A stretch of DNA of 64,000 nt from Diadema antillarum (GCF_040938485.1 NW_027271313.1:930001-994000); one strand, 5' to 3'; shown: positions 1 through 24,300, counted from the first letter of the stretch. The notes: generated from the sequence alone by a model not told the origin. A program made the numbers and translations.

Positions 1-610
1 GATGATGACGCGGACAAAATGACAATGGCTATTGTGTTCACACACATGTCATCTTACATTTAGCAGGAAAAATGTTACACGGTGCAGCGGCAGCAATTTC
101 ATTCGTTCTGAAGCGATCGTCGATTGGATCAAAAGAGGACGCCAACGGTTTCGAATATACGGGAGGGGTGGGGCGAAAAAAAACCAAATAAAAAAAGATA
201 AGAACAAAATGTAAGCTGAAATACAAAAATTTTCGGCTCGCTCGCTGCGCTCGCTCGCCAAAATTTCTCCAAAAAAGAAGAAGAGATAATTGGTATAAAT
301 CATTATCTGTAAGGTCGTCACTATTATCTTGATCAGAATTGTAAGATTTAATAAGCAGAAAATGACAAGAATTCCATGTTTTGTAAGCTGAAATACAAAA
401 ATTTTCGGCTCGCTCGCCAGAATTTATCAAAATTCATTACAGTTAAATCACCCTCAAAAGACACCTTTTAAGTGCTTGAAAAAGCATTATTATGTGGACT
501 TTGTTTAAAATTCCTACCGGGATGGGGTTGGGGTTGAACATTTTTTTCAGAAATTAGGGGCGCAATTTTCGCGCTTGCCCCGGGCGCCGTTTTCCCTAGA
601 TACACCACTG
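1..610. mobile_element. Right part of a non-autonomous TIR element
   Basis: Ends in GGGCGCCG...CCTAGATACACCACTG. Internal direct repeat GTAAGCTGAAATACAAAAATTTTCGGCTCGCTCGC at ~211 and ~382. Confidence 0.5.
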
Positions 611-619
611 CTTGTATTA

Positions 620-1010
620 CAGGGGCGGATCGAGGAATTCCGTAAAGGGAAAGCGCCTGTACAAATTTAAAGGCTGGCGCATCTCCCCCTTTTTTCTTTT
701 TATTTCTTTTGTGTTAACAAAAAATAGAGAGGATCCCCGACTACATCAACCACGAATGTCAGAACACATTCCTTACTTATTGCAGGGGTGGATCCAGGAA
801 TTCCGTAGAAGGGAGGCGCCTTTACAAAAGGATTGCTCACCCCTTTTCTTCTTTTGATTTCTTTTGTTTGAACAAAAAATAGAGAGGGGGCGCCAAAAGT
901 GCCCCCTATGGATCTGTGACTGCGTCAACCACAAATGTCTAAACTCATTGCTTGCATTACAGTGGCGGATACAGGAATTCCGTAAAGGGAAGGCGCCTTT
1001 ACAAAATTAA
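620..1010 (+). repeat. Three units of the same MITE-derived array
   Basis: CAG(G/T)GG(C/T)GGAT..AGGAATTCCGTA at 620, 783 and 960. Confidence 0.88.
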
Positions 1011-1660
1011 ATTCTGTCTGAAGAGGTATTGATAGATTTTACAACTCAAATGGAAAAACATTACAAAAATCTCCTATAGAAACTCTACCTATAAGCACGT
1101 CTGATGCTTTAAATGAAGCTTTTAGACGAGATAAACACTTAATTCATTACTTTGGTAAAGCGGACAAGCCACATATCACTCCAGTGTGAGTGAAAATGTA
1201 TCGAAAGGAACGGGTTCATTTATTTGAACGCGGTTGATGCTATAGGAAAAATGCTGCTTAATTTCAGTACTTTAGAATATGGCAAATATGAAAAATCGAA
1301 GACTGTGTCAACAGCTTGGACAAAGGAGAGGGCAAGAAACCGTCGACTATTCAATGAAAAACAACAGATCAAATCCTGAACTATATTCACCATTCTGATA
1401 TCCTGGAGACTCAACACAGCATCTTTTTTTCAGTCTGTTTGTCATCGGAACCTGAAACACGAAGGAGAACATATTTACCATCTTTGTATATCGTTACATA
1501 ACAAATAGATAAAGAAAGAAAGCAAGGAAGCAAGCCAGAAAGAAGGAAAACGTCTACACAGGCACCGGAAATTCAAGTGAAAGAGAAAATAACTCAAGTG
1601 ACTACACAAATTTGATGGTACTGCCTGCACGAGCTTGATGTAACGATTCAAAAGAAAATC

Positions 1661-1846
1661 TTCTTCTTCTTCTTCTTCTTCTGATTAAGTCTGCCTCCTT
1701 CAATAGACTGAAGATTCTTGCAGACTGGTGCTATTTACATTATAATACAATTTATTTACAGATATTTACAAGCACATAGAAAAATTGACGAAAATACTAG
1801 CCACTCTGATCAACCGTTAGACGGTTTCGAAATGATCCCACAGAAC
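1661..1846 (-). mobile_element. Short insertion with a (GAA)n tail, probably a 5'-truncated non-LTR retrotransposon end
   Basis: Absent from paralog C; begins with (TTC)n on the plus strand. Confidence 0.5.
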
Positions 1847-1970
1847 AAAGGAATAAGGTATCTCACACAACAGTTTTCTTACAGACTTTGCCAGACTCTT
1901 GCGGAGTCGGGCCCAAAATCACCTACCGCGAGATAACTTGCTAAATCTAGGCATTTTGATCGGAAGCTAA

Positions 1971-2535
1971 AGGGCTTTTTACACTTGTAAAATTTTGCTT
2001 AGCCCCGGACCAACGGTGGGGCTAAGGGGGGCCTTAGCCCCACCGTTGGTACGGGACTATCCTTAGCCCACTTTCTGTTTACACTCGTTTTTGCCAAAGT
2101 GGGCTAGCCCCACCGATAGTACGGTACTATCTGGCCCTGCAAAATAGCAGGGGTTAGCACCGCAATTGCGGTGCTAGCACCGCAATTGCGGTGCCAAGCA
2201 AGTGAGTGTAAACAGAACGAAAAAATAATCCTGGGCTAAGCGACGGAGACGAAGTCCGACCCTCACTGACCAATCAGAAACGAGGTCATCAAGTGCTGCC
2301 GGTGCGTGCGTGTACGTGTACAGTACACAGCGTAATTATGAATATTCGTGTGGTTTGGAAAGTCCTGGGCTAAGAAATACGAGTGTAAAAAGGTCAGTTT
2401 TCTCCTTAGCCCCGGACAAGAGATAGTACGGGACTAATTGGCGAGTGTAAAAAGCTGAAAAAATTGGTACGGGACTAACGATAGTCCTGGGTCAGAGAAA
2501 GTCCGGGGTTAAGAAACACAAGTGTAAAAAGCCCT
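1971..2535. mobile_element. PIF/Harbinger-type MITE
   Basis: 18-bp TIR AGGGCTTTTTACACTTGT; TAA TSD at 1968-1970 and 2536-2538; empty site with a single TAA at 32424-32426. Confidence 0.93.
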
Positions 2536-3283
2536 TAAGAGCACACCATCAAATGCGTATGAACAAGGAATAAAGCACTCAAAAGAATGCCGTTGTTATG
2601 TAAACAAAATTGGTGCAGAGTTTCATTATTACGTCACAGATCTTGAAATGAGCTGTACGCGCAGCGCGTTGATGAGGAGAAACGCAAGGTGAACATTGTT
2701 ACGTCACGTCTAGCATCTTGATAGGCATCAACAATTATCTTGACGTTGTCCTTGTGGGTCACTACAGAGGTTGAAATTTAGAATACCCCACGTTCCACAT
2801 TTCTTCACTTTTATACCAAACCTGTACTTTGAAAGATTCTCATACAACAGTAATCAATAGCTCAAAGCGATAATGATAATGAAAAAAAAAGTATATTCCA
2901 CCAATGAGCCGATATCCCGTCGAACAGTTTTGCATGGGGCGATAACTTCATCAAGATATGGGCATTATCAATCGAAGGGCTCGACATCAAATATTACAAC
3001 CGTTCAGCAATTAATGAATCAAAATGATCCTCACACCGTGTAAATGTGGGTAATGAATGATTGAAGTGCCGACATATTTGTAAGTCCACTAAAAGTTTCA
3101 GACGTTGATTTACTATTAGGCCTATAATGTATTATGTATTTTACATGCATTAGTGTGTATTTGTGATTGTATATATCTGTGGCTATACTAGTTCGGCGTT
3201 TTTGACTATATCGATCAACAATGTAATTTGCAAAGTCCTTATCAAGGTTGTTACCTCCAATGAGCAAGAGACACCGGGCTCAG

Positions 3284-3311
<28 letters not shown>

Positions 3312-3314
<3 letters not shown>

Positions 3315-3486
3315 GGGCGGATCTAGGAATTCCGTAAAGAGGGGATGCGTTTACAAAATCAAAGGGAGGGGGGCGCACGCACCCCTCCATCCATTTATTT
3401 CTTTTTATTTCTTTTGTTTCAACAAAAACAAATGGGGGGGGGGGGGGGGCGTGCGCCGGTTGCGGTCCTCCCTGGATCCGCCACTG
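3312..3486 (+). mobile_element. Solo MITE of the array family (hAT-like termini) inserted in (CA)n
   Basis: Termini TAGGGGCGGATCTAGG and CCTGGATCCGCCACTG; CA repeats on both sides. Confidence 0.75.
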
Positions 3487-4222
3487 CACACACACCGTGA
3501 CATACATACACACATACACGCGTACACGCACAGACTTTTTTACGAGTCAATGAAAATTTACCAACTTAGAAAGGAACGTAACAAAATTACCCAAGTACTG
3601 TTAAGAAATACCCAGGCTTAATGTGCAAAATAATGTTGGTAAATTATATAAGGCAAATTTCTACCAAAGTATCAGTTGCCTAATAGAATAAAAATTACCC
3701 AACACGCAAAGGGAATGCGTCACTTACACAACAGCGGGGCAAAAAGTACCCAACTTTCCATTATCAATTCTGTTGGTAAATATTCGCCCAATATCTAAGT
3801 AAGAATAATTGCCCATTGCTGTTTTAATCACCTAAAAGCTCAATTGGGCGATAATTGCCCAAAATGATGGTCTTTTTTTTTTTACCAACCAACAATTACC
3901 CAACTAAATTTACCCAATATTTTAAGAGTGTATCCTTATTCACATTATTTTGTGTCAGAAAATGATTCTTATGAAGATTTGTAAGGCCATTGGGAGACTT
4001 GTGAGCCCTTGTTATGATATCGTCATTTAATTAACATCCCTCGTGTTGTCTAGTATCGCTGTTTCAACATCACTGTTTTAATGAAGCTCTGAAAGTATCA
4101 AAGATCTGAAAATTCTAAAAACCGAATTGCAATGTGGAATTGCAGTTACGAAAGAAAAATTATTTATACCTAAAGGTCTGGATGAGACAGTAATCTTGTG
4201 CGCTTTGTGCTTGCGAAGAGGA

Positions 4223-4580
4223 TTGTTTGTTTGTCTGTTCATTTCAATCTGAGAAGATGGCTAGATAGCCAATATTTAGCTACACTAAGCTGGTCTTCCA
4301 TGGGGTCCAGTTGGATGTGAGGTGGGGCCACTTCATCGGGTAAAACGCCCTGCTCTTTGCGATGAATGAATGAAGCAGGATGTGTTACGTGCATGAGTTG
4401 TGGCTCTCTAAAACACGGGACCTCAATTTTATGTCCTTTTCGAGGGACAAAGTGTTTTGCCTCTTGCTCGAGGGGACGGTATTTTTACACACAAAATTGC
4501 TCAGTCCAGACTCGGGTTCGAACCTGGGTCCTTAGGATCGTGAGGCAGACGCGCTACCGACTGAGCCAACTCACCGCCCT
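4223..4580 (-). mobile_element. tRNA-derived SINE
   Basis: A box TGGCTCAGTCGG (4568-4557), B box GGTTCGAACCC (4524-4514), tRNA-like head and (AAAC)-like tail. Confidence 0.85.
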
Positions 4581-4677
4581 AGATAAACAGTTATGTCTGC
4601 GTTAATTATTTCGATTATTGTTGTGAAAATCCCAACGGACAAGATTAATTTTGAACAAGATTGCTGGTAAATGTGTC

Positions 4678-4833
4678 NNNNNNNNNNNNNNNNNNNNNNN
4701 NNNNNNNNNNNNNNNNNNNNNNNNNNNNNNNNNNNNNNNNNNNNNNNNNNNNNNNNNNNNNNNNNNNNNNNNNNNNNNNNNNNNNNNNNNNNNNNNNNNN
4801 NNNNNNNNNNNNNNNNNNNNNNNNNNNNNNNNN
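4678..4833. other. Assembly gap
   Basis: Run of N. Confidence 1.
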
Positions 4834-5272: not shown

Positions 5273-8013
5273 TGTGTTTGTGTGTGTGCGTGTGCGTTTG
5301 TGTGTGTGTGTGTGTGTTAACACTCGTATATTAAGACACATAAGGTATACAAAATGTATACAATGAGTCTTTCACACTCCGATTCAGAGATTGAAGAGAT
5401 CAGTTTGAAAAGGTAAAAATGAACAAAGAGAGAAAGTATGTGAAGTTGTTGCAACAGTGCTGGCTCGTTCGATTATGCACCTGTGACAAAGTGATTTGGA
5501 AATAGAAATTTTAATGAGCTTGAAAAAAAAATATGAAGGGAAAAAATTTCAAACAGAGAGACATAAAGTGTGAGGGAGATTAAAAAGAAAGAGACACAGA
5601 CAGAAACAAAAAAAAAAGGTAAAATGAGAATATCGGAGAAAGCTCAAATTTGGAGATACAGTGTTAAATTATTTACCAGCACCCAATAGGCTTGCCAAGT
5701 TTGGATTCCATAATATCCGTGTGAAAAACATCTGGGACGAGGACAAAAACAACAAGAGACATAGTGGTAACAAACCTACTTCCTGTATTTTCTCTGACAT
5801 GGTTTTGATTTGTAATTTCTCCGTCAAGTGCTGAGGTCAATCCAGGGACTCTGGACTCGAGAACTTTGCAGGACTGTTTAGAGAAAACCCCTACTGTTCC
5901 ATTAAACTCACCTCGGAAACTTGGTGCCCAGATGTGTTATGATGATAATTAGTCAGGAGCAGCGGTAAGCTTCCGTGTAGGCATATTAATTCTATATTCA
6001 ATTCAATTTAAAGTTGTTGCTTTTGATGCTGGGGGCGCATCTCTAGAAGTACAAAAAGTTGTGACGAGTTTCCTCATAACATAAATGAATATTACATCCC
6101 ATGATATGCAGTGTCACAGTTAAAGAGGAAATCCAGCCCAAATATAAGTTAGTCTGATAAAAAAGAGTAAAAATCTTACGAGTTCAACTATAAAAATACG
6201 ACTAAATAAGAAGGAAAAAAAGGAAGTTATGACATTTTGAGTTATGCTAATTTCTGCACAAGAGTTCTTGTACAATGGATATGAATATGCATATGAGGGA
6301 CCTAACCATGTCATACCCTCATAATTTTCCACTGATTGTGTACAAAATAAAAATGACGAAAATTCAATGTATCTGTCATTTAAGTCTGAAACATGACATT
6401 ATTCCTGGATGAATAACTTCAGAATAGTGATCAGTTAGATATACGAGGATTTGAGCCTCTGGAATAATTCGTTTGAATGAAAAAACGGGAAATTTCGAAA
6501 TGTATCTACAAACTATATCCATGGTTAGTTGTGAGGGAATGGCATGCTCACTTTGTCATTGCATATTCGTATTGACTGTTCAAGAACTGTTTTCCCCCAA
6601 AATAGCGAAACTTCAAGATGTCATAATTTCCTTATTTTTGAAACGCCTTTCGATCAATTTTATTCCGCTGAACTCGTAATATTTTACTCTTTCTTATCAG
6701 ACTAACTTATATTCGGATTGGATTTCCCCTTTAATATATAGAAATACAAATCCGAGGTAAGGACAAGAAAAAAGACGGAGACAGAGACCTAAACAACAGC
6801 AGAATCAAAGACAAGGAAATACGGACACTGACATTGACAGGGACATCAAGTTCGACTTAGTATATAACAACAATCATAGGGACATGGGACCCAACAGACG
6901 TGTAATACAGGGGGATTGTCGAGGGTAGAAAATAGAAAATCAGGCACAGCCCTCAAACAGTAAAGCGATACATGCAGCTGTCATGACAGCAAATAAAAAA
7001 AAAAAGGCGTACATTCACGTCGCCATACGCTTTGTCGTACAAAAAAAGGTATCATGGAACTAAACAACATTACGAAATAAGAGAGAAAAACAGAAGAACG
7101 ACAAACTTTGATGGCATGATTCCGACAGTAATATTGTATACAATGGTGTTGGGATCACAAAGACCAATCAACTCTTGACAGCGAGCCTGGCCCTGGGAGG
7201 GGACCTTCCAACAGACATCCTGAAGTACGTTGGGAGAGAGTTAAATACATTCGTTGGAAGCACGAAAGCAAAAAAAAAAAGAAAAAAAAAAGACATCAAA
7301 ATGAAGCAATTCAAGCCCGAGTTATCCCCGAGTCCGAGTCTAGCCTGACCCCGTTCGGGTAAGTTCTGAGACTGAACGTTTTTGGTTAATATTTCCCATT
7401 TTCGTCGTTACCCATCGAATATCTTGTTATTACAGCGTTATTCTGCACATTTCCTAGGCATACGTTCACATTTTGGAGCAAAATTTGACAACTTTTGCAG
7501 GCGTACCAGAACATTGTTTGGGGTTTAAAACATTACCCAATCCAACCCAACCCAATCCAATTAAGCATAGTTCAGGCTTCTCGGAGACACACGTTGATTC
7601 GAGTCGACTAATATTATCTTAATTGATTTTTATGCCCTACTATATTTTGAAGTAGATGTCAAGCACTAATTACATTTAACGAGATTTGAAGGTTTTTGCT
7701 AACTTTCTCACACTCACTGTTATCTTGCTTTTATTTCACTAATTTCATTCACAGCTTCTTCCGTTTTTTCTTTTTTTGGAAAGTAACTGTGATCACAGAA
7801 ACAGTGCTGAAAGTGAAATGGAAGATTAAACGAGAACTTACCGTTTGAAGTTTAATATTAATTTTATGAGTAATTGGAGGGTGAGATTACGTCATATATG
7901 AGATCCCGCTAGTGCGCGCGCCACTCAATATTAGAAGCAAGAATGTGACCACTGACGTAGGAAGATAACGAGAGATTAAGTTACCGTTTGAAATTTGGGG
8001 GAGGGTGAGGTGG

Positions 8014-8123
8014 GACGTAATCTCACCCTCCAATTACTCATAAAATTAATATTAAACTTCAAACGGTAAGTTCTCGTTTAATCTTCCATTTTATATCGTA
8101 ATTTCGTGAGAGATTACGTCATA
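8014..8123 (-). repeat. DIRS-A internal complementary region (ICR)
   Basis: Perfect complement of the 3' terminus and of the 5' terminus, joined through CCATTT (the circle-junction sequence). Confidence 0.95.
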
Positions 8124-8310: not shown

Positions 8311-9288
8311 CTATTTTTTGATAATTGTTTCTACAAAGGTTTTCTCAGCAGGACAGGGCTTGTTGTAGTACTTGCGAAAGGTTCTTTCGTTGGCCCAACC
8401 GGCTTGCACAAGTATTTTAGATACTGGGAAATTTCCCTTATTGGCTGCGGAGGTAGACGCTGCCCGAGTAGAGTGCGCCTTGTAGATCTCTGTATCAATA
8501 CCCGCAGCCTCCAAAACCTCCTTAATCCAGCGAGCGATTGTTTGAGATGATACCCTGTGATACGGTTTCTTGTAGCTAACAAAAAGGTACCGTTCACTAG
8601 CTCTGATTCTGCGGGTCCTGCTGATGTATTCCTGCAAGTACCTGACTACACAAAGTCTCCTGTCTGGCGGGTATGCCTGGAGCTTGACACTGTGTGAGTA
8701 ATTTCCAGGCTTGCTCTGTTTTAGGAGATCATGAAGGTGAAAGGTGACTGCATTATCTCTTAACACCATACCATCCAAGCTTAGATAGTGTAATGATTGA
8801 ATCCTTTGTGCTGAGATTAATGCAATAATCACACACAATTTAAGCGTCAATTTTTTCAGGTCCAAAATGTGCGCTGGGGACCAAGAACGAAGAAAATTGA
8901 AAACAAGGTTAACGTCCCACATTTCCATGTATCTAGGCTTGGGTGGGCGTAGCTGAAAGACTCCCTTCATAAACCTCTGGATAAAGGGATGGTTTCCAAC
9001 TGTAAACATAGTATCTCGAAGAATCACAAATGAAGATAGAGCACTCCGTGCTAAGTTTATGACACTGTAACCTGCCCCTTTATCGAAGAAAATGTCACTC
9101 AGGAATTCCAGGATAGCTTGAACATCCGAGTACAAGTAGTTGCTGCATTTTTTGTCACAAAATGCTTTCCATTTGTTTATGTACACTGCATACTGTTTTT
9201 TAGTCCCTTTTCTCCAAGAGGAGGCCATTACAGCAGTTATACGTGCATTCAATCCCGCATCTCTGAAGGGCTTGCACAGAACCTGCAA
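8311..9288 (-). CDS. DIRS-A ORF3, tyrosine recombinase (YR)
   Basis: Catalytic pattern AQRIQSL (R), KQSKPG (K), HSTRAAS (HxxR), AGW, FRKYY (Y). No ATG at the 5' end (TGA-TCT-TCT-TGC-TTG-CAG-GTT). Confidence 0.95.
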   Translation of the reverse strand: MQVLCKPFRDAGLNARITAVMASSWRKGTKKQYAVYINKWKAFCDKKCSNYLYSDVQAILEFLSDIFFDKGAGYSVINLARSALSSFVILRDTMFTVGNHPFIQRFMKGVFQLRPPKPRYMEMWDVNLVFNFLRSWSPAHILDLKKLTLKLCVIIALISAQRIQSLHYLSLDGMVLRDNAVTFHLHDLLKQSKPGNYSHSVKLQAYPPDRRLCVVRYLQEYISRTRRIRASERYLFVSYKKPYHRVSSQTIARWIKEVLEAAGIDTEIYKAHSTRAASTSAANKGNFPVSKILVQAGWANERTFRKYYNKPCPAEKTFVETIIKK

Positions 9289-11383
9289 GCAAGAAGATCA
9301 ATCTGAGTGTTTAGTGGGTGAGGAGTGTTAGAAACTGGCAATGTTAGTAAGGATTCACTCCTATGAATAACAAGTGGTTCCTCATTCATCATCCTGTTTA
9401 GGAGAGGAAACCATGGCTGGCTTGGCCATTTTGGGACTACTAGTATCCCAGTTGCATTATCAGATTTGATTTTTTGAATGCACTTAGCAACTAAGCAGAA
9501 AGGAGGAAATGCGTAAAAGTACCACTTTCCCCAATCGAGAGTAAAGGCATCAACAGCCTTGGCATGTGGGTCGGGCAACCATGTGACATAGTTCTCTACC
9601 TGCTTGTTAAGTCTGGAGGCAAATAGGTCTATTTCTGGTGTCCCAAAACGTGAAGTTATTTCTTGGAAAACTGTGCGGTCAAGCATCCATTCTGTGCGGT
9701 CATTGAAAATTCTAGACATGCGGTCTGCCTCCACATTCAGCTTTCCTGGCAAGTGTGCTGCAGTGACCCAAATTTTACGAGTTTCGCACCGCTGCCAAAT
9801 CTCTCGGGCTGCCCGATCACAGTCAAGGGATTTAATGCCTCCCATGTTGTTAATGTACGCAACAGCAGTACTGTTATCTAGCCGTAACAAAACATGAATG
9901 TTTTGTGAATTAGAACAGAAGGACTTGAGTCCCATGCCAGCAGCCAGGGTCTCCAGATAATTAATCTTATTCTCCCTGGCTTTTTGCAGCTCGTCTTCAT
10001 TCCATCTACCCCCTGTATGGGTGGTATGATCAGATGCCCCCCAGCCTTTGCCACTGGCATCCGTGCACAATTCGAGCATAGGTTTAGGGTGTCGTAAGGG
10101 TGAGAAAGTAGACTGCACATTGTCTGTCCACCATTGCAGCTCTTGTTTTGCTTCCAAAGATAGGCTCATTTTTCTGTCAAAATGCCCCTTATTCATTTTG
10201 AGTGCTTTGATTTTGTCCCTTTCTAAAGCCCTGTAATAGAGCTGTCCATACTGGACTGCGGGAAATGATGCTACCATTTTCCCGATAATTCTAGCCACCT
10301 GCCTGATACTGGGGTTTGCCATTTGCATAAGTTCATTGCACAAGGACTGTATTTCCTCTGATTTGTTATCAGGCAGTCGAATTGTCATGGCCTGAGTATT
10401 GAGAATGAAACCAAGAAATTGTATTTCTTGAGTGGGGCATAGTACTGATTTTTCTGGGTGTACCAAGAACCCAAGTTGTGCAAGGATGCTAGTGGTTTCA
10501 AAAACCGTTTGCAATGTTTGATTCTCACTTTCTCCAATAATGAGTACATCGTCAAGGTATCCAATTACTACATGCCCTTGCTCTCTCAGTAATGTAAATA
10601 CAGGTTTCAGTAGTTTAGTGAATAACCTTGGCGCCGTGCTCAGGCCATTAGGCAGTACTTTGAATTGCCAAAGTTGATTTTTCCAGGAGAACTTTAAGAA
10701 CTTCCTGTGTGTTGGGTGCACAGGTACTGTATAGTACGCGTCCCGAAGGTCGACTGAAGCTAAGAAGCTATTTTCTGAAATGAGTTCAATAGCAGTATGG
10801 ATATTTTCCATCTTAAAATGCTGGTACTGGAGATATTTGTTGAGATCAGACAGGTCTAGGAAACGCGTGTACCCCCGTCTTTTTTAGGCCGTGTAAAAAT
10901 ATTAGACACGAATTCTCCAGTTTCCATCTGGCACGGTTCGATTACTCCCTTGTCATGGAGTTTAGAAATTTCAAGATCAATATCAGCCTCTTCGGCTTTA
11001 TTACACCGAAAAAGGTAAGGGGGTTTAGTTCTAGATGGTGCACCCATCTCTTTACTGAATTCAAGCCTGTAGCCACTTACAGCATTTAGCACATGTGGGT
11101 CTGAAGTAATTTTGCGCCACTTTGGGAGGAATTGCTTCAGTCGACCTCCTACCATAGGTTCTACATTATTATGACATAGCTTTGCATAATCACTAGAATC
11201 AGATGTCATGTTTACCTCGTCAGTTGAACTGGAGGTTATCGTGCTCTCTTCATCCCTGAGCCCTGCTTGCTGCCGCAGTGCGGTTGGTGCTGGCTGGGAT
11301 ATGTGAAGGTGTGGGGAGCCGACGGCTTCCCCCTCCCCTTGGGGCGCTGGCCTAAAAAAGCATGGCTGGTAGCTCCAGTCCAC
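9249..11383 (-). pseudogene. DIRS-A ORF2, reverse transcriptase-RNase H-DNA adenine methyltransferase, split by a 1-nt deletion near 10861
   Basis: Track ORFs 10856-11383 and 9249-10811 join as ...RPKKDGGTRV[I]LDLSDLNKYLQYQHFKMEN if one base is restored. Motifs: YLDD; RNase H TDASG/NYLE/DNSTAV/ADRMSR; MT DLFAS and YAFPPF. Confidence 0.9.
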
Positions 11384-12684
11384 GGTCCTTTTGCACCTGT
11401 AGGCCTAGTGACATCACTTGTACTTGCACGAGAAGTAGTCCAGCCCGCGTCGCGGTACTGTTGGGGCAAATTTGAGCTTCCTGATGTAATCTTGCTCCTG
11501 CCCTTGCCATATGCACTCCTGCCATAGTCATATGGGCTGAAACGCTGCTTTTTGAATTGTCTGCTATGCTCACTCCTGAGGACACCCTCAGTTGCTTTTT
11601 GTTCATCTCTTATGTCTTTCATTTGCCTTCCCAGGTCGTCACCAAAAAGGAATTTGGAGACCGGGGTAGAGGGCTTGCAGAGATGCTGGAATTGATAACC
11701 AATGTCTGGTTTCATGAATTCCTTACGCAAGGAATTTAGCTCGAAATTCGCACTGCACAGAAGTGCTAGTGCATCTTGTTGCTGTTCAGTGATATCCTGT
11801 GCCGACACTGTATGTATGTAGGCATTGATGCCTCTCGTGAGATTCTTTTGGAGTCTCTGAAATTTGAGGTCTCGTGTCTTTGAAAAGGCAGGTAGCCCAT
11901 TCCAGATTCTTTGGTTGACTTTCGGCACATCCACCAGCTCACAGTTGCTGGGAATGGGGTATTTAGTGATCGTTTCATCTACCACTTTGGGCTCGAGCTG
12001 GTGGGTCAGAAGGTAGGCTGTAGACTTAGCAATTTCTGGGTCAATGGGGGGACCAACTTCCTCAGCCACAGCAAATTTGGCTGCAATGTTTGGCACTTTC
12101 TCCACTACAGAAGGGGGAACTTCGCCTTCTTCAATATCAAATTTGTCATCACGACTATCCCCTTGACCTGGTTGGATAATCACAGAGTTTTCATCCATAT
12201 CTCGGCCCAGAAATGGTGCCGCATATTCATCATCATAATGGCAGTCAGTATCTGCCGAGTCTGAAGGGGAGTATTCAGAACGAGTCCTGATACTCTTTCC
12301 ATTGCCACCGCCTTCACGGGCTGGTGTCTGCTTTGCCGACTGTGCCTCCACAAATTGAACAACCACAGCTAATTGGCCTTCAAGCTTGCCGAGTCTATCT
12401 TCCAAAGTTGAAACTTTAGAGGCCAGTTTGGCAGGTGGTTTCACTGTTTTGTTTGCACCGGTACTACCGCTAGGGTTAGCACTGCTTGTTGTAGTAGTAC
12501 TATTACTAGTACCTGCCTTGCCGGCTCTAGTAGGCGTTTTACCTTTGGCTGTCGCAGTTTTCTGCTTGCACTCTTGTGCGTGCTGGTCTCCGCGACCCCC
12601 GCCGGTGGCTGCCGGGGACGCGACTGCTGTCAGCAGCGGTGGTGCGGCTGCGCCGCCCACGTTTGGAACGTTGGTCGAAGACAT
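11236..12684 (-). CDS. DIRS-A ORF1, Gag-like protein (482 aa)
   Basis: Long ORF at the ORF1 position. Short coiled coil (STLEDRLGKLEGQL), then a block alignable to DIRS-B ORF1 (VPKVN..IW, RD.K.QR.Q, DALALLC.AN.E.N.LRKE..KPD, LFGDDLG). Confidence 0.92.
   Translation of the reverse strand: MSSTNVPNVGGAAAPPLLTAVASPAATGGGRGDQHAQECKQKTATAKGKTPTRAGKAGTSNSTTTTSSANPSGSTGANKTVKPPAKLASKVSTLEDRLGKLEGQLAVVVQFVEAQSAKQTPAREGGGNGKSIRTRSEYSPSDSADTDCHYDDEYAAPFLGRDMDENSVIIQPGQGDSRDDKFDIEEGEVPPSVVEKVPNIAAKFAVAEEVGPPIDPEIAKSTAYLLTHQLEPKVVDETITKYPIPSNCELVDVPKVNQRIWNGLPAFSKTRDLKFQRLQKNLTRGINAYIHTVSAQDITEQQQDALALLCSANFELNSLRKEFMKPDIGYQFQHLCKPSTPVSKFLFGDDLGRQMKDIRDEQKATEGVLRSEHSRQFKKQRFSPYDYGRSAYGKGRSKITSGSSNLPQQYRDAGWTTSRASTSDVTRPTGAKGPWTGATSHAFLGQRPKGRGKPSAPHTFTYPSQHQPHCGSKQGSGMKRAR
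11313..11359 (-). promoter_or_regulatory. Predicted -1 ribosomal frameshift signal (T TTT TTA plus downstream stem), DIRS-A
   Basis: Heptamer 11359-11353 is phased to the gag frame, and the -1 frame is ORF2. Stem GGGGAG/CTCCCC with a 14-nt loop. Confidence 0.75.
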
Positions 12685-14518
12685 AAATTCCGTTGCTGTT
12701 CAGCTGAAGAATGATCGTTAAAACCAGAAAAAACCTGGCAAAACCTCCCGTAGAGGTAACTTTCGCTATTACGTCGATCCAACTCGAACGAAAACTTGAA
12801 TATTCAAGTGCAATTCCGGCGAATTTTCCGAGCACAGAAATTCGCGTGTTAGCAAGATGGCGGCGACTAACGAATTGAGTGGCGCGCGCACTAGCGGGAT
12901 CTCATATATGACGTAATCTCTCACGAAATTACGATATAAAATGGTTTATTAATTTCGTACCAAAATTTACGTGACGAAGGAGGGTTGCAGATGGATGCGC
13001 ATGAACATTCTCCATACATGTCATCAAATTAAGGCCTGCGGGCGAGGATAACAACTGTCAATACGTTAACATGGGGGACAACAAACCACGTGAATATAAA
13101 ATAGTAACAAAGTTTAAAGATCGGATGACAATCACCTTCAGTTTCACCCATAAAGTTATCACTTCAGCTGTATGAATCAAAGACTGTAGAACAGGACCTA
13201 TGATAACTGCTTTCATTTGTGATCATTACTGTTTGCAATAAACTCCACTATAATGGAAAGTCTCTCAGATCATAATATGCATCTGTCTGTGTGTGAAGTT
13301 CTTTCATTCCGCCATTTTGTGGTAGGTTGTAGTCTTTGAGGTTAAAAGATAGAGAGAGATCGGTGAATGCCCGAAGGCATGTTTGTAGTTATCAATGACT
13401 CCACAACTATGATGGAGTAATGATTATTGTTTAAGGCAACAGCGAGAGAGAAGTATATACATTGATGGAGGAAATGCATCAAATTCTGGAGAGATGCTGA
13501 AGTCTAAAATGAAATGATATTTGGATTGTTATTATTATATTACACAAACTTACAAAGTTGATGACACCGGCTGTACCGGGTTGGTGTAAAACCGTAACGA
13601 CTCAAAATATTATCAAACCAACAAAACATCTCACCTGTGGTGGCACAAAATAATTTGCTTTGCCAGCCGCTTCGGAGTCGGGTCCAAAATCGCCCATCAC
13701 GAACGTGGTAAATCCAGGCATTGCTAAGAGCACACCATCAGATACGTATGAGCAAGGACCTTTAGGATTTTGGTATGAACAGCACAGGAGAAATCACTAG
13801 GCATAAACCACTTAGTGGGGTGGCTTAGTGAAATTATCGTGACACGGCGGACAAAAGCATGATTTTTTCACCAAAGGTACTTCATGATGTACCTTCTCAA
13901 AAAATAGGGTGCTCCAAGAAAATTGATGCTGGGAAGGAGGTCAGAGGTCAAAGGTCAATGACCTTTATTTGTGAAATAGGTTTTTTGGCTATTTCTCAGG
14001 TCAGGAATATCCAATCTGGATAAAACTTGGCAGGAAGAATATTGAGAACAAGTAAAATATTTTGATTGAATTTGGAGTGAATTTTCCAAAGGTCAAAGGT
14101 CAAAGGTCAATGAACTTTTTCTAAAAATCACGTTTTTGTTTATTTCTCCAGGTAGGAAGATTCAATTTTCACAAAATTTGATATGAACGTTGTATAGAAG
14201 GTACCAAGAGTATAAACCAGGGGTTAAATATAATTGTTGATTTGTACGTTGCCATGGCAACCCAAAACTAGGGCTTTTGATTGAAGTTAGTTACAGGAGG
14301 CTATTTTCCAGTTTGGAAGAGATTCTATTTGAATAGGTACAACTGATCGACGGGATGTATAGAGGTTTGAAATACTTTTCATTAGTGTTAAGTGGTATGT
14401 TGCTATGGCAACTACATATATAGATTTTGGCTAAACTTAAAGGAGACTTCAGAACTTATGAATTTGAAGAGATTTCCATCAGGGTTGGTATAATTGATCA
14501 ACAAAAAAGTCGCCAGAC

Positions 14519-18388: not shown

Positions 18389-21300
18389 ACAATTAATTGT
18401 ATTATTATGTATGCACATTAATTAGAGTCATATTCACTGAAAATATACGAAAAAGTGTTTGATACAATAAAAGTGACGATTGGATAAGATTATAAGACCT
18501 ATTGTGAACAATGTTACTACAGATAGTGGGTTTACTGTACATGAGCTGTCGTACAGCTGCCCTACTGAGGTTGTGAAGAAGCATCATTATATTCCTACAC
18601 AGCAGTGTTTCCAGTCTGTAGCGTCATATCAGATTTCCCTTAAAAAGCAGCATCCTGATTCACTTTGAGAACTATTTTTAAAGACGTAGTTTTAAGTTTT
18701 GTTGGTGATGGAAAATGAATGAATGAAGACTAAGTGTTATGCAGCCACAGTAAATGGTGGAAATAGATGCAAAGTGAGATTTTTGCATTACTAAGGTCAG
18801 ATTATTGAATGATAACTTAGTACCGATCCGAGGTACAGGTTTATTGCATTTTACAATCTCTTCATTTCTCATTGTGTGCCAAGCTGGTTGAGACAGCCCG
18901 CCGAATTCCATCACAACCAGTGTACCTGGCTGGTAATCTTCTTCTCCAACGGCTGAAAGAGTCCCTTCAAAACAAGGAGCTGAAGGAACAGATTGGTGTA
19001 CGTAATGCCCCATTTCTTTGATAATCAATTAAGATCCACATGAACACAGGCGTAAGACCCGAGAATACGGTGAACTTACAGTTGTCATACATATCTTTGG
19101 AAGACGATGAAAAAAACATAGAGAAGCCCCCACCCCCACAGACACAAACAAAAAAGATATAAATAAAAAGAAAAGATATTTTATTTCGTGAGTTTACGCA
19201 AGAACTCACAGTGAGAGCCCGCTCAACGCGCGCGCAGTCATATCGCTTCTTCGCACGTTTTGCACGAGGGGCTAAGTTCCCTCATCGCAGTCTAAATCCA
19301 GTTTTATTCGTCCTTTTAACTGTGCATCTTCGCAATATCTTATCATATTGTGGATTGTTATTATTTATAGCTCAGTTAGAGCTGACTTTGCTTCGGAAGT
19401 GGATTTTTATTCACGAGATATCGCGGGATGGAAATTCCGCTTTCCGCTCCCCCACAGCATACAGCTAAGCCTGTCGTGGGTGGCACCACTAGTACGAGCG
19501 CCCTGCATACAGCTAAGTCTGTCGTGGCGATGGTGACTACAGCCGTGCATCATGAACCCAAGTGTTCGCCGGCTAGTAAGGCTCCAACAAAGAAAGAAGG
19601 GAATGGGAAAACCCTTAAAAAACCCACCAAACCGGGCCTAAGTAAGAAGGCAGCTCCCCCTAAAGAGAAGACGGACGCGGAGGTGCTTTCCCGCCTTTCT
19701 AAACTCGAATCCATGTTTGAAAAGGTCATGGAAATACTGCCGTCTCAGCCTACTCGTATCCAACAACAGCAACTACGTGCCGGCCATGTTGGCACGGCTT
19801 GTACCGCAGAAAACCACGGTGGTGTGCCGTTTGGGGGCATGGATGTGTGTGCTACAGACGATAGTACGCAAGCACGCGGTACGCTGCACGACGACCACGG
19901 CGGCAGCAGCTACAGTGGGGATGAATGCGATTTCCCTGCGGCGGCAGCGGGTTACGCACCCGCAGAGCTCACGGGGCGGCCAGTACAAGTGCCATCCTTT
20001 GCTGCAAAATTTGCGGTCTCCGCCTGTGTGGGCGACCCTATCAATGACGAATTGGCAAATTCTACGAATTATCTCATCTCCCATTGTCTGGAGGAAAAAT
20101 CTATGGAAGAGTCAGCGGCAAACTACCCAGCACCGAGCAATTGCCCCAACTTACTAGTCCCTAAAGTCAATCCAGTGATTTGGGATAATGTGACACAGAC
20201 TACGCGCAGCAGAGACGTTAAGCTGCAGAGAGTACAGACATCTCTTACCCGCGGGCTGTGTGCGTTCCTACAAACTCTTCCTACTGACTTGAACGAGGCG
20301 CAACAGGACGCACTCGCTTTACTCTGTAATGCCAATTACGAGATGAATTGCCTGAGAAAGGAGCTGATCAAGCCCGATATGAACGCTGCTTACGCACATC
20401 TGTGCAAGCCTACTACGCCCGTGACCGCGTTTCTATTCGGTGATGACTTGGGACAACGTGTAAAAGATCTCAAGGAGGAGAATAGGGCTGCCTTTAGTGT
20501 GGTTAAAGGCCAGGCTAAGAGATCTACTCATCAGCCGTACCACCCATACAAGCGCACGGCCAGCGGTGGATTCAGCCGGAAGCAATATCGGAACGCAGGC
20601 TGGCTCGCAGCTGGCGATACATCCAGGCCTTTTTTAGGCCAGCAGCAGCGGGGATACAGACATTCAGCCCCGCACACGCAGACTCGCCCACCTCCAGCTC
20701 ATGCGCACAACCGGGGGCAGAGCTACTCGACAGCAACCCCAGCCAAGCCAAACACTGTGTCACGGAGAAAGTAACTGCACTACCCAAGGAGGTAAGTTGC
20801 AGGCCTAGCTCTTGTTGTGGAAATACACAATCTACTCACACTGTACAGTCAGTTTTTGACATTGAACATGTAGATGTTCCATTAGACCTGCCCGTTGGGG
20901 GTCGATTGAGGCATTTTAGCAAACAGTGGAATCATATTACCACTGATCCTTTCATACTTGATGCAATTAGCGGTTACAAACTTGAATTTCAAGAGGCGTA
21001 TAGCCCACCTCACAGAGGTAAACCGCCTTACCACTACAGAGTGGGTAATGCTGAGGAGAGCAAGATTGACATTGAAATTCGAAAACTGGCCGAGAAAGGC
21101 GTAATCGAAGAATGCCAGCATGTGGCTGGAGAATTTGTGTCCAATATCTTTACACGCCCAAAGAAAAATGGGGACATACGCCTAATTTTAGATTTATCGG
21201 ACCTCAATGACAGTCTGAATGTACAGCATTTCAAAATGGATAACATCCATACGGCTACAACCCTAATTTCCCCTGGTTGTTACCTTGCCTCAATCGACCT

Positions 21301-24300
21301 TCGAGATGCCTACTACTCTGTCCCTGTTCACCCCTCATATCGCAAGTATTTGAGATTTGTCTGGCATGAGAAATGTTGGCAATTTAAGGTACTCCCCAAT
21401 GGCCTTAGTACAGCGCCTAGGCTCTTCACAAAGCTTATGAAGCCGCTGTTCGCAAAGCTGCGACAGGCAGGCCACCTGGTTGTGGGGTATTTAGATGACA
21501 CTCTCATAATCGGTGAAACTGAATCACAAGCACTAGAAGCGGTGCAAGCAACCACAAAACTGCTCTCTGACCTTGGTTTTGTCATTCATTCAGAGAAATC
21601 TATCCTAGAGCCTCAGCAACGGCTCCAATTTTTGGGGTTTATCTTGGATTCGGAAAGCATGACTATAACGCTCCCGCATGAGAAATGTCAAAATATCAGG
21701 GCAGTATGTGCGGAATTGCTAGGGAAACAAAACCCTACTATCAGGCAGGTGGCGCAGGTCATTGGGAAACTGATTGCTACTTTCCCTGCTATTCAATATG
21801 GCCCCCTCTTCTATCGTAACCTAGAAAGAGACAAAATTCTTGCACTAAAATCAAGCAAAGGGCATTTTGATCGACCTATGAATTTGTCTGAAGCTTCTAA
21901 ACAGGAGTTAATGTGGTGGTTCAATAACATTCACTGCCAGTCGGCACCAATTAGTCGAGATCGGCCAGCTTTAGAGCTACGTACTGACGCCAGTGGGCAA
22001 GGATGGGGTGCCACTGATTTAAGCAGTGAAACTGGCGGTAGATGGGATGATCAGGAGATAGTGCATGCTCTAAACAATGAAATCAACTATCTTGAAATCT
22101 TAGCTGCAGGGCTTGGTTTGAAGTCATTTTGCGGCCACCTGCATGATACACATGTGCTCATTAGAACTGACAACACAACAGCTGTAGCCTACCTGAACAA
22201 TATGGGAGGCATTAAATCTCGAGCCTGCGACAGGGCAGCACGAGACATTTGGGTTTGGTGTAAGGAAAGGAATATCTGGATCACAGCAGCCTATTTACCA
22301 GGTCGTGACAATACAGAAGCAGACAGGAGATCTCGTCATTTTAATGACAGAACAGAATGGATGCTGAATAAGAAAGTTTTTACTGATATCACTAAGAAAT
22401 GTGGTACTCCCCAAATTGATCTTTTCGCGTCCAGACTCAATAAGCAGCTGCCTGCGTACGTTACGTGGCTGCCTGACCCAGATGCGGTTTCTGTGGATGC
22501 ATTCACTCTGAATTGGGGTGATCTGTATTTCTACGCATTCCCTCCTTTCTGCCTCATCCCCAAATGTCTCCAAAAAATAGAAAACGACAAGGCACATGGT
22601 CTCTTGATTGTCCCAAACTGGCCTACGCAAGCGTGGTTTCCTCGCATGAGGAGAATGCTTAAAGATGAACCACTCTTAATTCCTAGACACAGGAATTTGA
22701 TTACGCAACCAGTATCTGGGGAACCGCACCCTTTACACGCTTGCCTTGATCTGTTATGTTGCAGGTTTTGAAGCTGCCGTTCGAGAACTCTGGCATGAGC
22801 AGCAGAACGGTGGACATCTTGGCAGCATCTTGGAGGGCATCAACCCAAAGACAATATTGTACATATATAAGGAAATGGAGAAAGTTTTGTACACTTAAGA
22901 AGGAAAGTCACCTTCATGCCAAGATTAATTTTGTTTTGGAGTTTTTTACACACATGTTTTATGAAGAGAACTTGAGCTATTCAGCTATTAACTCAGCACG
23001 GAGTGCACTTGCTACCTTTCTAGTGTTAGAGGATGAACAATTTACTGTCAGCACTCATCCGCTTCTCTCTCGTTTTATGAGAGGTGTGTTCCAGCTCAGG
23101 CCCCCAAGGCCGCGGTATTCGGAAATTTGGGACGTGAATATTGTTTTTAGATATTTGAGAAGTCTAGCTCCCGCTAACTCGCTTAGCTTGAAGCAATTAA
23201 CGATGAAGCTGTGCATGTTACTGGCCTTGATATCCACCCAGAGGGTACAGACTTTGCATTGCCTGAATCTAGACAGCATGATTCTCAAACAATCTATGGT
23301 GTCATTCAAAGTTAATGAACATCTTAAGCAGTCTAGACCTGGGAATTTTGGATTGGACGTACTTTTGAAAGCGTACCCCCCAGACAGACGTTTGTGTGTA
23401 GTTACATACATTAAGGCCTACCTTCGGAGAACCAAAGAGATCCGAGGAGAGGAAAGTCATCTCTTCATTAGTTTTCGCAAGCCTTTCAAGAGAGTAACGG
23501 CACAGACAATTTCTCGATGGATCAAAGAAATCATGACTGGCGCTGGCATTGACACCACAATGTTCAGTGCACATTCAACCCGAGCAGCATCTAGCTCAGC
23601 AGCAAACAGGGCGGATGCACCTATTCCTCTGATCCTCGCAAAAGCAGGCTGGTCAAAAGAACGAACATTCCGTAAATTCTACGACAAACCTCTACAAGAA
23701 GAGGGACAGTGCCTGTCACAACTCATTGTGAGGGAATAATGACCTCAGACCAAGGTAATTTGAGCTTACATTTTGCTTGCCATTGTGCATGCTTGAGTTT
23801 GTTCAGTTGGAACAAATGTGACTTCTGTGCTACAAAATCTCACTGTGAGTTCTTGCGTAAACTCACGAAATAAAATAGAAAGATTAAACGAGAACTTACC
23901 TGTTTGAAGTTTGATCTTTATTTTATGAGGGAGTTGGAGAAAGAATTCACAGTCCCTCCTCTCCCTTCCCATGGCATGAATACTATTACAAAATGTATAG
24001 ATCAACTTCAAGTAAGTTCTCAATCTTTCCACTCTGACAGAAGTCACATCTTGTTGCTACGAAGTATGACTGCGCGCGCGTTGAGCGGGCTCTCACTGTG
24101 AATTCTTTCTCCAACTCCCTCATAAAATAAAGATCAAACTTCAAACAGGTAAGTTCTCGTTTAATCTTTCTATTATCCATGATCTTAGTGAAGACGAGAC
24201 ACTATTCTACCATCGTGTAATGAAGCGTCAACCGGCCATTGACTCCACAAGTGTTTATGACTTCAACAAAATGACCTGATGGAATTGAATGTTCATTCTT

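Follow-up and report, generated by a model that had tools for sequence, protein, structure and literature searches.

A candidate pol-removing intron in DIRS retrotransposons of Diadema antillarum

How DIRS elements express their tyrosine recombinase (YR) has never been explained. The YR ORF often lacks a start codon and overlaps pol in another frame. The question is raised by two DIRS elements, one on each strand, found in a 64,000-nucleotide stretch of the Diadema antillarum genome (GCF_040938485.1 NW_027271313.1:930001-994000, hereafter the window). A first-pass annotation had proposed that each carries a cryptic in-frame intron that removes exactly the RT-RH-MT region. To better understand whether such an intron could account for recombinase expression, we read the sites in the sequence, compared them across diverged DIRS lineages and searched for spliced forms. 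The splice signals are present and deeply conserved. In the absence of RNA data the intron remains inferred, though we judge it probably real.

Splice-like signals in the two DIRS elements

First, the identity of the two elements was verified. Pfam RVT_1 was found in the two pol ORFs (E = 1e-22 and 7e-21), and Phage_integrase plus the N-terminal SAM-like domain in both downstream ORFs. The recombinase has 1132 homologues, the named ones coming from echinoderms, molluscs, a brachiopod and a cnidarian. A methyltransferase domain follows RNase H, which separates DIRS1-like elements from Ngaro and VIPER. In the minus-strand element, Pfam Dam was detected at E = 2e-6 (28.0 bits, just under the 28.1 cut-off). 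A weaker PCIF1_WW-type hit falls at the same place in both elements, and Dam is called in relatives. The plus-strand element carries arms of 80 nt, 100% complementary, at 23874-23953 and 24095-24174. The minus-strand element carries arms of 78 nt at 7816-7893 and 8014-8091, plus end-to-end inverted matches 7883-7929 / 12874-12920. Both are therefore DIRS1-like retrotransposons, ordered gag, RT-RNase H-methyltransferase (pol) and YR. They are separate families, with 36% identity in Gag, 62% in pol and 53% in YR. At least five other DIRS families, with YR frames of about 331-384 aa, are present in this genome.

The plus-strand element spans about 19178-24174, as deduced from a joint 19177->24172 in contig run X5 and from the terminal repeat. 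Its features are as follows.

19428..20774 (+): gag ORF, with the stop TAA at 20772-20774.
20630..20636 (+): T_TTT_TTA slippery heptamer in the gag frame, the presumed -1 frameshift site opening the pol frame, which is open from 20519.
20637..20791 (+): pol-frame leader between the slippery site and the donor, without Met; it would be the linker of a Gag-YR fusion.
20789..20797 (+): 5' splice site GAG|GTAAGT, with GT at 20792-20793, 17 nt after the gag stop and at a pol-frame codon boundary.
20792..22764 (+): proposed 1973-nt intron holding the whole RT-RNase H-methyltransferase coding region; RVT_1 and a methyltransferase-like hit fall inside it.
22746..22764 (+): branch-like TTGAT (22746-22750), pyrimidine-rich tract and CAG acceptor, with AG at 22763-22764, reading ...CCTTGATCTGTTATGTTGCAG|GTT.
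22765..23739 (+): proposed exon 2, the YR ORF from its first conserved codon to its stop; the pol stop TGA at 22769-22771 lies just inside it in another frame.

The minus-strand element spans about 12952-7816 and shows a similar arrangement.

11236..12684 (-): gag ORF, with the stop at 11238-11236.
11353..11359 (-): T_TTT_TTA slippery heptamer in the gag frame; the pol frame is open from 11404.
11210..11218 (-): 5' splice site GAG|GTAAAC, with GT at 11215-11214, 20 nt after the gag stop and at a pol-frame codon boundary.
9283..11215 (-): proposed 1933-nt intron, the RT-RH-MT region; in this copy pol is interrupted by a frameshift near 10860.
9283..9301 (-): branch-like TTGAT (9301-9297), pyrimidine tract and CAG acceptor, with AG at 9284-9283, reading ...ATTGATCTTCTTGCTTGCAG|GTT.
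8311..9282 (-): proposed exon 2, the YR ORF, with no ATG before residue about 21 of the conserved region.

Every coordinate given by the first-pass annotation is correct. As it also stated, the donor reads E-V and the acceptor C-R in the pol frame, and YR homology starts at the acceptor. In both elements a TGA in the YR frame lies 5 codons before the acceptor. No ATG lies between that TGA and the acceptor in the minus-strand copy, whereas the plus-strand copy has one at 22756. The term in-frame used for the intron needs a gloss, however. Neither intron length is a multiple of 3, and the splice would join a complete pol-frame codon to a complete YR-frame codon, the YR frame being -1 relative to pol. 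In order to test whether the sites exceed chance, all GT and AG sites were scored with simple weight matrices, built on approximate consensus values and not trained on this organism. The donor ranked 2nd of 237 GT sites in the plus-strand element and 6th of 238 in the minus-strand element. The acceptor ranked 1st of 343 and 1st of 353 AG sites, respectively. The branch-like TTGAT fits yUnAy about 15 nt before the AG, although it also corresponds to the pol codons L-D and no branch can be mapped from sequence.

Conservation of the sites across diverged lineages

In order to determine whether synonymous variation destroys the GT or AG in relatives, we compared 27 DIRS lineages with 36-66% pol identity, taken from metagenome and genome contigs. 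Of these, 24 have a phase-0 GT site scoring at least 4 in the 2307 nt between the gag stop and the GGRL motif, and in 25 the best pol-frame site lies 2-44 nt after the gag stop. For comparison, 35,868 nt of pol body hold 7 such sites and 33,120 nt of gag body hold 17, counting all phases. The candidate is usually the top-scoring donor of the coding region. Two lineages lack a good donor, L068 having GTTGAA and L121 having none.

The donor behaves as a nucleotide signal and not as a protein motif. The codon preceding it is GAG, CAG, AGG, AAG, GCG or TCG, encoding E, Q, R, K, A and S. Yet position -2 is A in 20 of 25 and position -1 is G in 24 of 25. Position +3 is R in 22 of 25, three lineages having a pyrimidine instead (GTTAGT, GTCAGT), +4 is A or G in 24, +5 is G in 23 and +6 is T in 24. 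Elsewhere in pol, invariant V, R and E columns mostly show mixed synonymous codons, and GAA makes up 69% of E codons. The donor always lies downstream of the gag stop, and in 25 lineages the distance from the first base of the stop to the exon end is 5-47 nt, never more, although up to 182 nt was available (KS test against a uniform distribution, p = 6e-8). This is in agreement with the remark of the first-pass annotation that a stop under 50-55 nt from the junction would escape nonsense-mediated decay.

The acceptor is the best site in YR-frame phase 0 in 26 of 27 lineages, whereas control AG sites in the pol body show no phase-0 preference (5 of 24). It occurs 21 codons before the SWR motif (class I, as here), 88-95 codons before it (class II, at the pol FPPF motif) or, in one lineage, 46 codons before it. 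The branch-like motif, tract and CAG recur in class-I relatives. Where the class-I acceptor is lost, as in the Lingula-type elements with CAA-G, a stronger acceptor appears about 70 codons upstream, in the same phase and at the opening of a correspondingly longer YR frame. The acceptor always lies 0-23 codons after the YR frame opens, and in 7 lineages, including L047, the stop that opens the frame is the acceptor's own TAG. For class I alone, protein constraint is not excluded, since the two overlapping frames (pol C-R, YR L-Q) leave no free synonymous site at the acceptor. The intron length modulo 3 is 2 in every intact element with both sites, including the intact relative L045.

Many YR ORFs have no usable ATG. 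In 23 of 27 lineages, no ATG lies between the frame opening and the acceptor, and some have none within 150 codons after it. The region right after the acceptor is conserved protein. The space shared by all lineages between the YR-frame stop and the pol stop is a few nucleotides, with no slippery heptamer, which argues against a pol-to-YR frameshift. Termination-reinitiation is likewise unlikely, as there is mostly no ATG in the overlap. In contrast, a canonical heptamer lies in the gag/pol overlap of 26 of 27 lineages.

A model for recombinase expression and its alternatives

We consider it likely that the pol region is an optional spliceosomal GT-AG intron. Unspliced RNA would serve as the genome and give Gag, as well as Gag-Pol by -1 frameshifting at T_TTT_TTA. 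In a fraction of transcripts, the 5' splice site just after the gag stop would be joined to the 3' splice site at the first conserved YR codon. The same frameshift on the spliced RNA would therefore carry ribosomes from gag through a short leader into YR, giving a low-abundance Gag-leader-YR protein. Ribosomes that do not shift would stop at the gag stop, less than 50 nt from the exon junction, so that the spliced RNA should escape nonsense-mediated decay. That splicing occurs, that YR is made as a Gag fusion and that decay avoidance sets the donor's position are inferred.

No RNA run was available. Contigs of four runs of unrecorded type, probably DNA and hence not a test of splicing, crossed both sites unspliced and showed no 20791->22765 joint, but only several unrelated deletion joints. 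No intron-less genomic copy appeared among about 98 loci that hold a YR, although processed copies might be expected because spliced RNA would keep both termini. The only pol-less locus, L123, is an ordinary internal deletion with the donor unspliced. Searches of 5.8 billion proteins gave no YR protein with a leader-type N-terminal extension; the YR of the minus-strand element retrieved its own family (P0017, 100% identical) but no extended form. YR proteins of 360-437 aa correspond to the class-II architecture, their extensions being the YR frame read through the end of the methyltransferase domain ('LAHPSLV' is the other frame of 'WPTQAWF'). NCBI gene models from Diadema, Amphiura, Mytilus and Exaiptasia are pol-fragment/YR chimaeras, not gag-YR.

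Other readings of the signals appear less likely. Splicing could be real but chiefly produce a gag messenger raising the Gag to Pol ratio, as seems to be established for copia and BARE1, or YR could be translated from the spliced RNA by re-initiation or a non-AUG start. Indeed, gag is intact in the spliced RNA predicted for every lineage, 7 of 25 lineages have an ATG in the pol-frame leader, and a few class-II elements, for example L105, have exon 2 starting with ATG. However, a gag-only role does not need phase, yet the donor is at pol-frame phase 0 in 23 of 27 lineages and the acceptor at YR-frame phase 0 in 26 of 27, with the constant length modulo 3 noted above. Moreover, the leaders of both window elements have no Met. 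We regard this reading as unlikely.

It is more doubtful still that the donor-like motif binds U1 snRNP without splicing, for example to suppress premature polyadenylation or to retain RNA in the nucleus, YR being expressed by recoding or re-initiation at the pol/YR overlap. Notably, an even better 5' splice-site match (CAG|GTAAGT) lies in the 3' terminal repeat of at least 14 of 27 lineages, where no downstream acceptor belongs to the element, so that U1-type motifs may have another use in these elements. P0142 shows that a single-frame pol-YR fusion can exist, and the plus-strand element has an ATG 13 nt before the pol stop. This view does not, however, explain the phase-0 acceptor at the opening of the YR frame or its movement together with that opening between classes, most lineages have no ATG there, and no conserved slippery heptamer lies in the overlap. 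Finally, GAG-GTA and TGC-AGG could simply be conserved E-V and C-R codons of pol. Valine is invariant at the donor and followed by S, G or N, pol ends with a conserved LDLLxCR motif, and a Lingula-type element has the conservative change C-K, which removes the AG. The cross-family counts already make this explanation very unlikely. In addition, Ser after the valine is AGT in 14 of 14 cases although TCN makes up about 70% of Ser codons, the motif sits in an otherwise unalignable linker and tracks the gag stop, and the acceptor AG is part of a YR-frame stop codon in the 7 lineages mentioned above.

A broader reading, which we hold only slightly more probable than not, is that DIRS1-like retrotransposons of animals run a three-product programme from one promoter: Gag by termination, Gag-Pol by frameshifting on unspliced RNA and Gag-recombinase by the same frameshift on RNA lacking pol. 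The donor would be held within about 50 nt of the gag stop by nonsense-mediated decay, and the short and long pol/YR overlaps would be two alternative acceptor positions. This would be the first account of how any DIRS element expresses its recombinase. Under the model above, the integration enzyme would travel with the capsid-like protein, splicing, frameshifting and the 50-nt decay rule would together shape a mobile element, and annotators would gain a simple rule for DIRS gene models.

Comparison with known retroelements

Descriptions of DIRS1-like retrotransposons (Piednoel et al. 2011, PMC3266345; Malicki et al. 2020, PMC7192593) match the present gene content, inverted terminal repeats and internal complementary region, and report a variable long ORF overlap between pol and YR in half of the annotated elements. 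The long/short dichotomy is left unexplained there; here, it corresponds to two acceptor positions. Neither paper mentions splicing of the element's own RNA: 'intron' and 'splic' do not occur in PMC3266345, and the only introns in PMC7192593 are in engineered markers. We found no paper describing such an intron, although an old remark on splicing in the work of Goodwin and Poulter 2001 on the DIRS1 group cannot be excluded.

In retroviruses and errantiviruses (gypsy), a single full-length transcript is both genome and gag-pol messenger, and an optional splice removes pol to express env, so that unspliced and spliced RNA must coexist. In retroviruses, however, the major donor lies in the 5' leader upstream of gag, so gag is removed as well, and env has its own AUG. 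Here, the donor lies just after the gag stop, gag and the frameshift site would stay in the spliced RNA, and the downstream ORF, mostly without AUG, would be joined in frame to the frameshifted leader. Drosophila copia, barley BARE1 and the Ogre Ty3/gypsy elements use host splicing of their own transcript to set the ratios of their proteins, the pol region being the intron in copia and BARE1. Those splices yield a gag-only messenger or, in Ogre, restore a pol frame, and none brings an integration enzyme into frame. The slippery heptamer is identical to that of the HIV-1-type gag-pol -1 frameshift (U_UUU_UUA), and likewise lies in the gag frame within the gag/pol overlap, where it would make pol a minor Gag fusion. 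In the DIRS elements, the same site would serve two messengers and give two different fusions, Gag-Pol and Gag-YR.

Two DIRS1-like elements and their candidate splice sites

Two DIRS1-like retrotransposons, hereafter A and B, were found in the stretch. Their main features, including the candidate splice sites (a slash marks the proposed cut), are as follows.

about 19178-24174, plus strand: element A
19428-20774, plus strand: gag of A, with the gag stop at 20772-20774
20519 to 22771, plus strand: open pol frame of A, opening inside gag
20630-20636, plus strand: T_TTT_TTA in the gag frame of A
GT at 20792, plus strand: candidate donor GAG/GTAAGT of A, 17 nt after the gag stop
AG at 22763-22764, plus strand: candidate acceptor of A, a TTGAT motif, a pyrimidine-rich run and CAG/GTT; proposed intron of 1973 nt
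to 23739, plus strand: YR of A
about 12952-7816, minus strand: element B
12684-11236, minus strand: gag of B
11404 to 9249, minus strand: pol frame of B, opening inside gag, interrupted by a frameshift near 10860
11359-11353, minus strand: T_TTT_TTA in the gag frame of B
GT at 11215, minus strand: candidate donor GAG/GTAAAC of B, 20 nt after the gag stop
AG at 9284-9283, minus strand: candidate acceptor of B; proposed intron of 1933 nt
9288-8311, minus strand: YR of B

Pfam searches identified RVT_1, a Dam/PCIF1-like methyltransferase region and Phage_integrase with its SAM-like N-terminal domain. The terminal repeat and the internal complementary region are perfect 78-80-nt inverted matches. 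A contig of run X5, which carries a different organism label, joins 19177 directly to 24172 and thereby skips the whole 4994-nt element A. This looks like an empty site or a related locus without the insertion, and it fixes the ends of the element. A and B are separate families, with 36% identity in gag, 62% in pol and 53% in YR. Each family has dozens of copies at 99-100% identity in the 1.75-Gb genome. The genome also holds at least five further DIRS families, each in many copies, with YR open frames of about 331, 337, 380, 381 and 384 aa. The named relatives of the YR come from echinoderms, bivalves, a brachiopod and a cnidarian. Just downstream of element A, inside an ORF at 24836-25603, four tandem 42-nt units (25235-25439, plus strand), 66-71% alike, encode a Glu/Ala/Arg/Lys-rich 14-residue repeat. 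They are flanked by AT-rich microsatellite blocks at 24300-24560 and 25800-25960 that are inverted relative to each other.

All the coordinates given for these splice sites in the first-pass annotation were confirmed. However, its description of the intron as in-frame needs a gloss. The donor follows a complete pol-frame codon and the acceptor precedes a complete YR-frame codon. Because the YR frame is -1 relative to pol, the intron length is 2 mod 3, from which B deviates because of its internal frameshift. The pol frame is reached through T_TTT_TTA, and the leader up to the donor contains no Met. A TGA closes the YR frame 5 codons before each acceptor. Between that TGA and the acceptor, B has no ATG whereas A has one at 22756. 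All sites were then scored with a simple consensus weight matrix, the values of which are approximate. The donors of A and B ranked 2 of 237 and 6 of 238 GT sites on the sense strand, and the acceptors ranked 1 of 343 and 1 of 353 AG sites. In four runs of assembled contigs of unrecorded type, probably DNA in view of their even cover over the whole element, contigs crossed both sites unspliced and no 20791->22765 joint was observed, a result that neither tests splicing nor supports it.

Donor sites in diverged DIRS lineages

The first-pass annotation had cautioned that the E-V and C-R codons of pol could mimic splice sites. In order to test this, full-length relatives were collected. Six lineages came from contigs encoding YR homologues, to which a Lingula copy was added, and 80 more loci came from one metagenome scan; most relatives come from unnamed metagenome contigs. 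On one of these, L104 (positions 1-4679), two DIRS copies lie head to tail, the YR end of one being followed by the gag and pol start of the next, which could reflect a tandem insertion or an assembled circular or concatemeric form. After keeping elements with an intact pol and a gag of at least 250 codons, and merging those with at least 80% pol identity, 27 lineages remained, with pairwise pol identities of 36-66%.

In 24 of the 27 lineages, a GT site scoring at least 4 was found at pol-frame phase 0 in the short, unalignable stretch between the gag stop and the first conserved pol motif, GGRL. This stretch totals 2307 nt. The same threshold was met only 7 times in 35,868 nt of pol body and 17 times in 33,120 nt of gag body, counting all phases. 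The candidate is usually the best donor of the whole coding region, and the best site in this stretch is in phase 0 in 23 of 27 lineages. Two lineages lack a good donor: L068 has GTTGAA, and in L121 the gag stop abuts GGRI with no GT.

The decisive point is which positions are conserved. The codon before the GT is GAG (11), CAG (8), AGG (2), AAG, GCG, TCG or GCT, corresponding to six different amino acids. Nevertheless, position -2 is A in 20 of 25 lineages and position -1 is G in 24 of 25. The valine codon is GTA or GTG in 22 of 25, and the next codon is AGT (14), GGT (7) or a near variant; position +5 is G in 23 and position +6 is T in 24. Notably, Ser after the valine is always AGT, although TCN makes up about 70% of Ser codons in these pol genes. 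GAA is 69% of Glu codons, and other invariant V, R and E columns of pol mostly show mixed synonymous codons. This is the U1-complementary consensus AG/GTRAGT preserved as nucleotides, not a peptide motif.

The position of the donor was also examined. It is never upstream of the gag stop and always lies in the first half of the available space, with a mean relative position of 0.22 (KS test against uniform, p = 6e-8). The distance from the first base of the stop to the exon end is 5-47 nt in all 25 lineages, and this holds for the 19 lineages that had more than 55 nt available. This fits the proposal of the first-pass annotation that a stop so close to the junction would escape junction-dependent decay. 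Indeed, ribosomes terminating at gag on the spliced RNA would lie within the established limit of 50-55 nt that spares a messenger from such decay, though the role of this limit here is an inference.

Acceptor position and opening of the YR frame

The best AG site between the opening of the YR frame and the conserved SWR motif is at YR-frame phase 0 in 26 of 27 lineages, whereas strong AG sites in the pol body show no such preference (5 of 24). The acceptor is not at one homologous place. In class I, which includes A and B, it lies 21 codons before SWR, or 25 in lineage L047, and reads TGCAG/ or TGTAG/, which is pol C-R; this acceptor lies in a doubly coding stretch with no free synonymous site. 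In class II, it lies 88-95 codons before SWR, at or just after the pol motif FPPF, whose codons make a natural pyrimidine tract (TTYCCNCCNTTYAG/). One lineage, L126, has it 46 codons before SWR. In every case, the YR frame opens 0-23 codons upstream of the acceptor, and in 7 lineages, L047 among them, the stop that opens the frame is the acceptor's own TAG. Intron length is 2 mod 3 in every intact element with both sites. Judging from the size of the YR frames in the further families of this genome, both acceptor classes probably coexist in one host.

The Lingula element shows the logic of this arrangement. At the class-I position it has CAA-G, so that the YR Gln is kept, pol has the conservative C-K, and the AG is lost. 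About 70 codons upstream, it has the strongest acceptor of the element, in phase 0, 9 codons after its much longer YR frame opens. The long ORF overlap reported without explanation for half of the annotated DIRS1-like elements (PMC3266345) is therefore what an upstream acceptor would produce.

Proposed expression of the recombinase

The residues right after the acceptor are conserved protein, yet 23 of 27 lineages have no ATG between the frame opening and the acceptor. Several have none within 150 codons after it, and in others the first ATG lies 18-91 codons in, past invariant residues. A frameshift from pol into YR would have to occur between the YR-frame stop and the pol stop; taking A and L047 together, that shared space is about 6 nt and holds no slippery heptamer. 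Termination-reinitiation lacks a start codon in most lineages. Splicing to the frameshifted leader is the only route that works for all of them. In one DIRS relative (protein P0142, 437 aa, from a Logan contig), however, the end of the methyltransferase domain runs straight into the recombinase in one reading frame, giving a pol-YR fusion, which could be a real variant or a one-base difference in that copy.

We propose that unspliced RNA gives Gag and, by -1 frameshift, Gag-Pol, whereas spliced RNA would give Gag and, by the same frameshift, Gag-leader-YR. A canonical heptamer (T_TTT_TTA, A_AAA_AAC or similar) lies in the gag/pol overlap of 26 of 27 lineages, always upstream of the donor. The existence of the signals, their conservation at the nucleotide level, their phase and their placement result directly from the sequence comparison, whereas the occurrence of splicing, the fusion product and the role of decay avoidance are inferred. 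No intron-less copy was found among about 98 YR-bearing loci. Locus L123 (1150-1700) belongs to a 2.6-kb DIRS derivative with gag, about 95 codons of the pol N-terminus, then an internal deletion into the end of the methyltransferase domain and the YR; with its donor intact, it is a non-autonomous deletion copy and not a spliced copy. No leader-extended YR protein appeared in two large searches either. Overall, the comparative evidence strongly supports the interpretation and, although no junction was seen in RNA, for want of RNA runs holding the element, we consider it likely that this is a working intron. That YR is made as a Gag fusion through the shared frameshift is only somewhat more likely than not.

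Optional removal of pol by splicing appears to be used for retroviral and gypsy env messengers, and for copia and BARE1 gag messengers. The arrangement proposed here differs in that the donor lies after gag, the frameshift site is retained, and the downstream enzyme is joined in frame and usually has no AUG. Splicing of a DIRS element's own RNA is not mentioned in the DIRS literature that we examined, which did not include the 2001 paper of Goodwin and Poulter.

Finally, another GT site was noticed at 24146-24154, in the right terminal repeat of element A. It is the top-scoring GT site of most elements and recurs 320-600 nt after the YR stop in at least 14 of 27 lineages (L037, L043, L050, L055, L088, L103, L112, L126 and others), the remaining ones mostly having too little tail on the contig. 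No acceptor downstream of it belongs to the element. This site may bind U1, or may simply be part of the recombination or ICR-pairing site.
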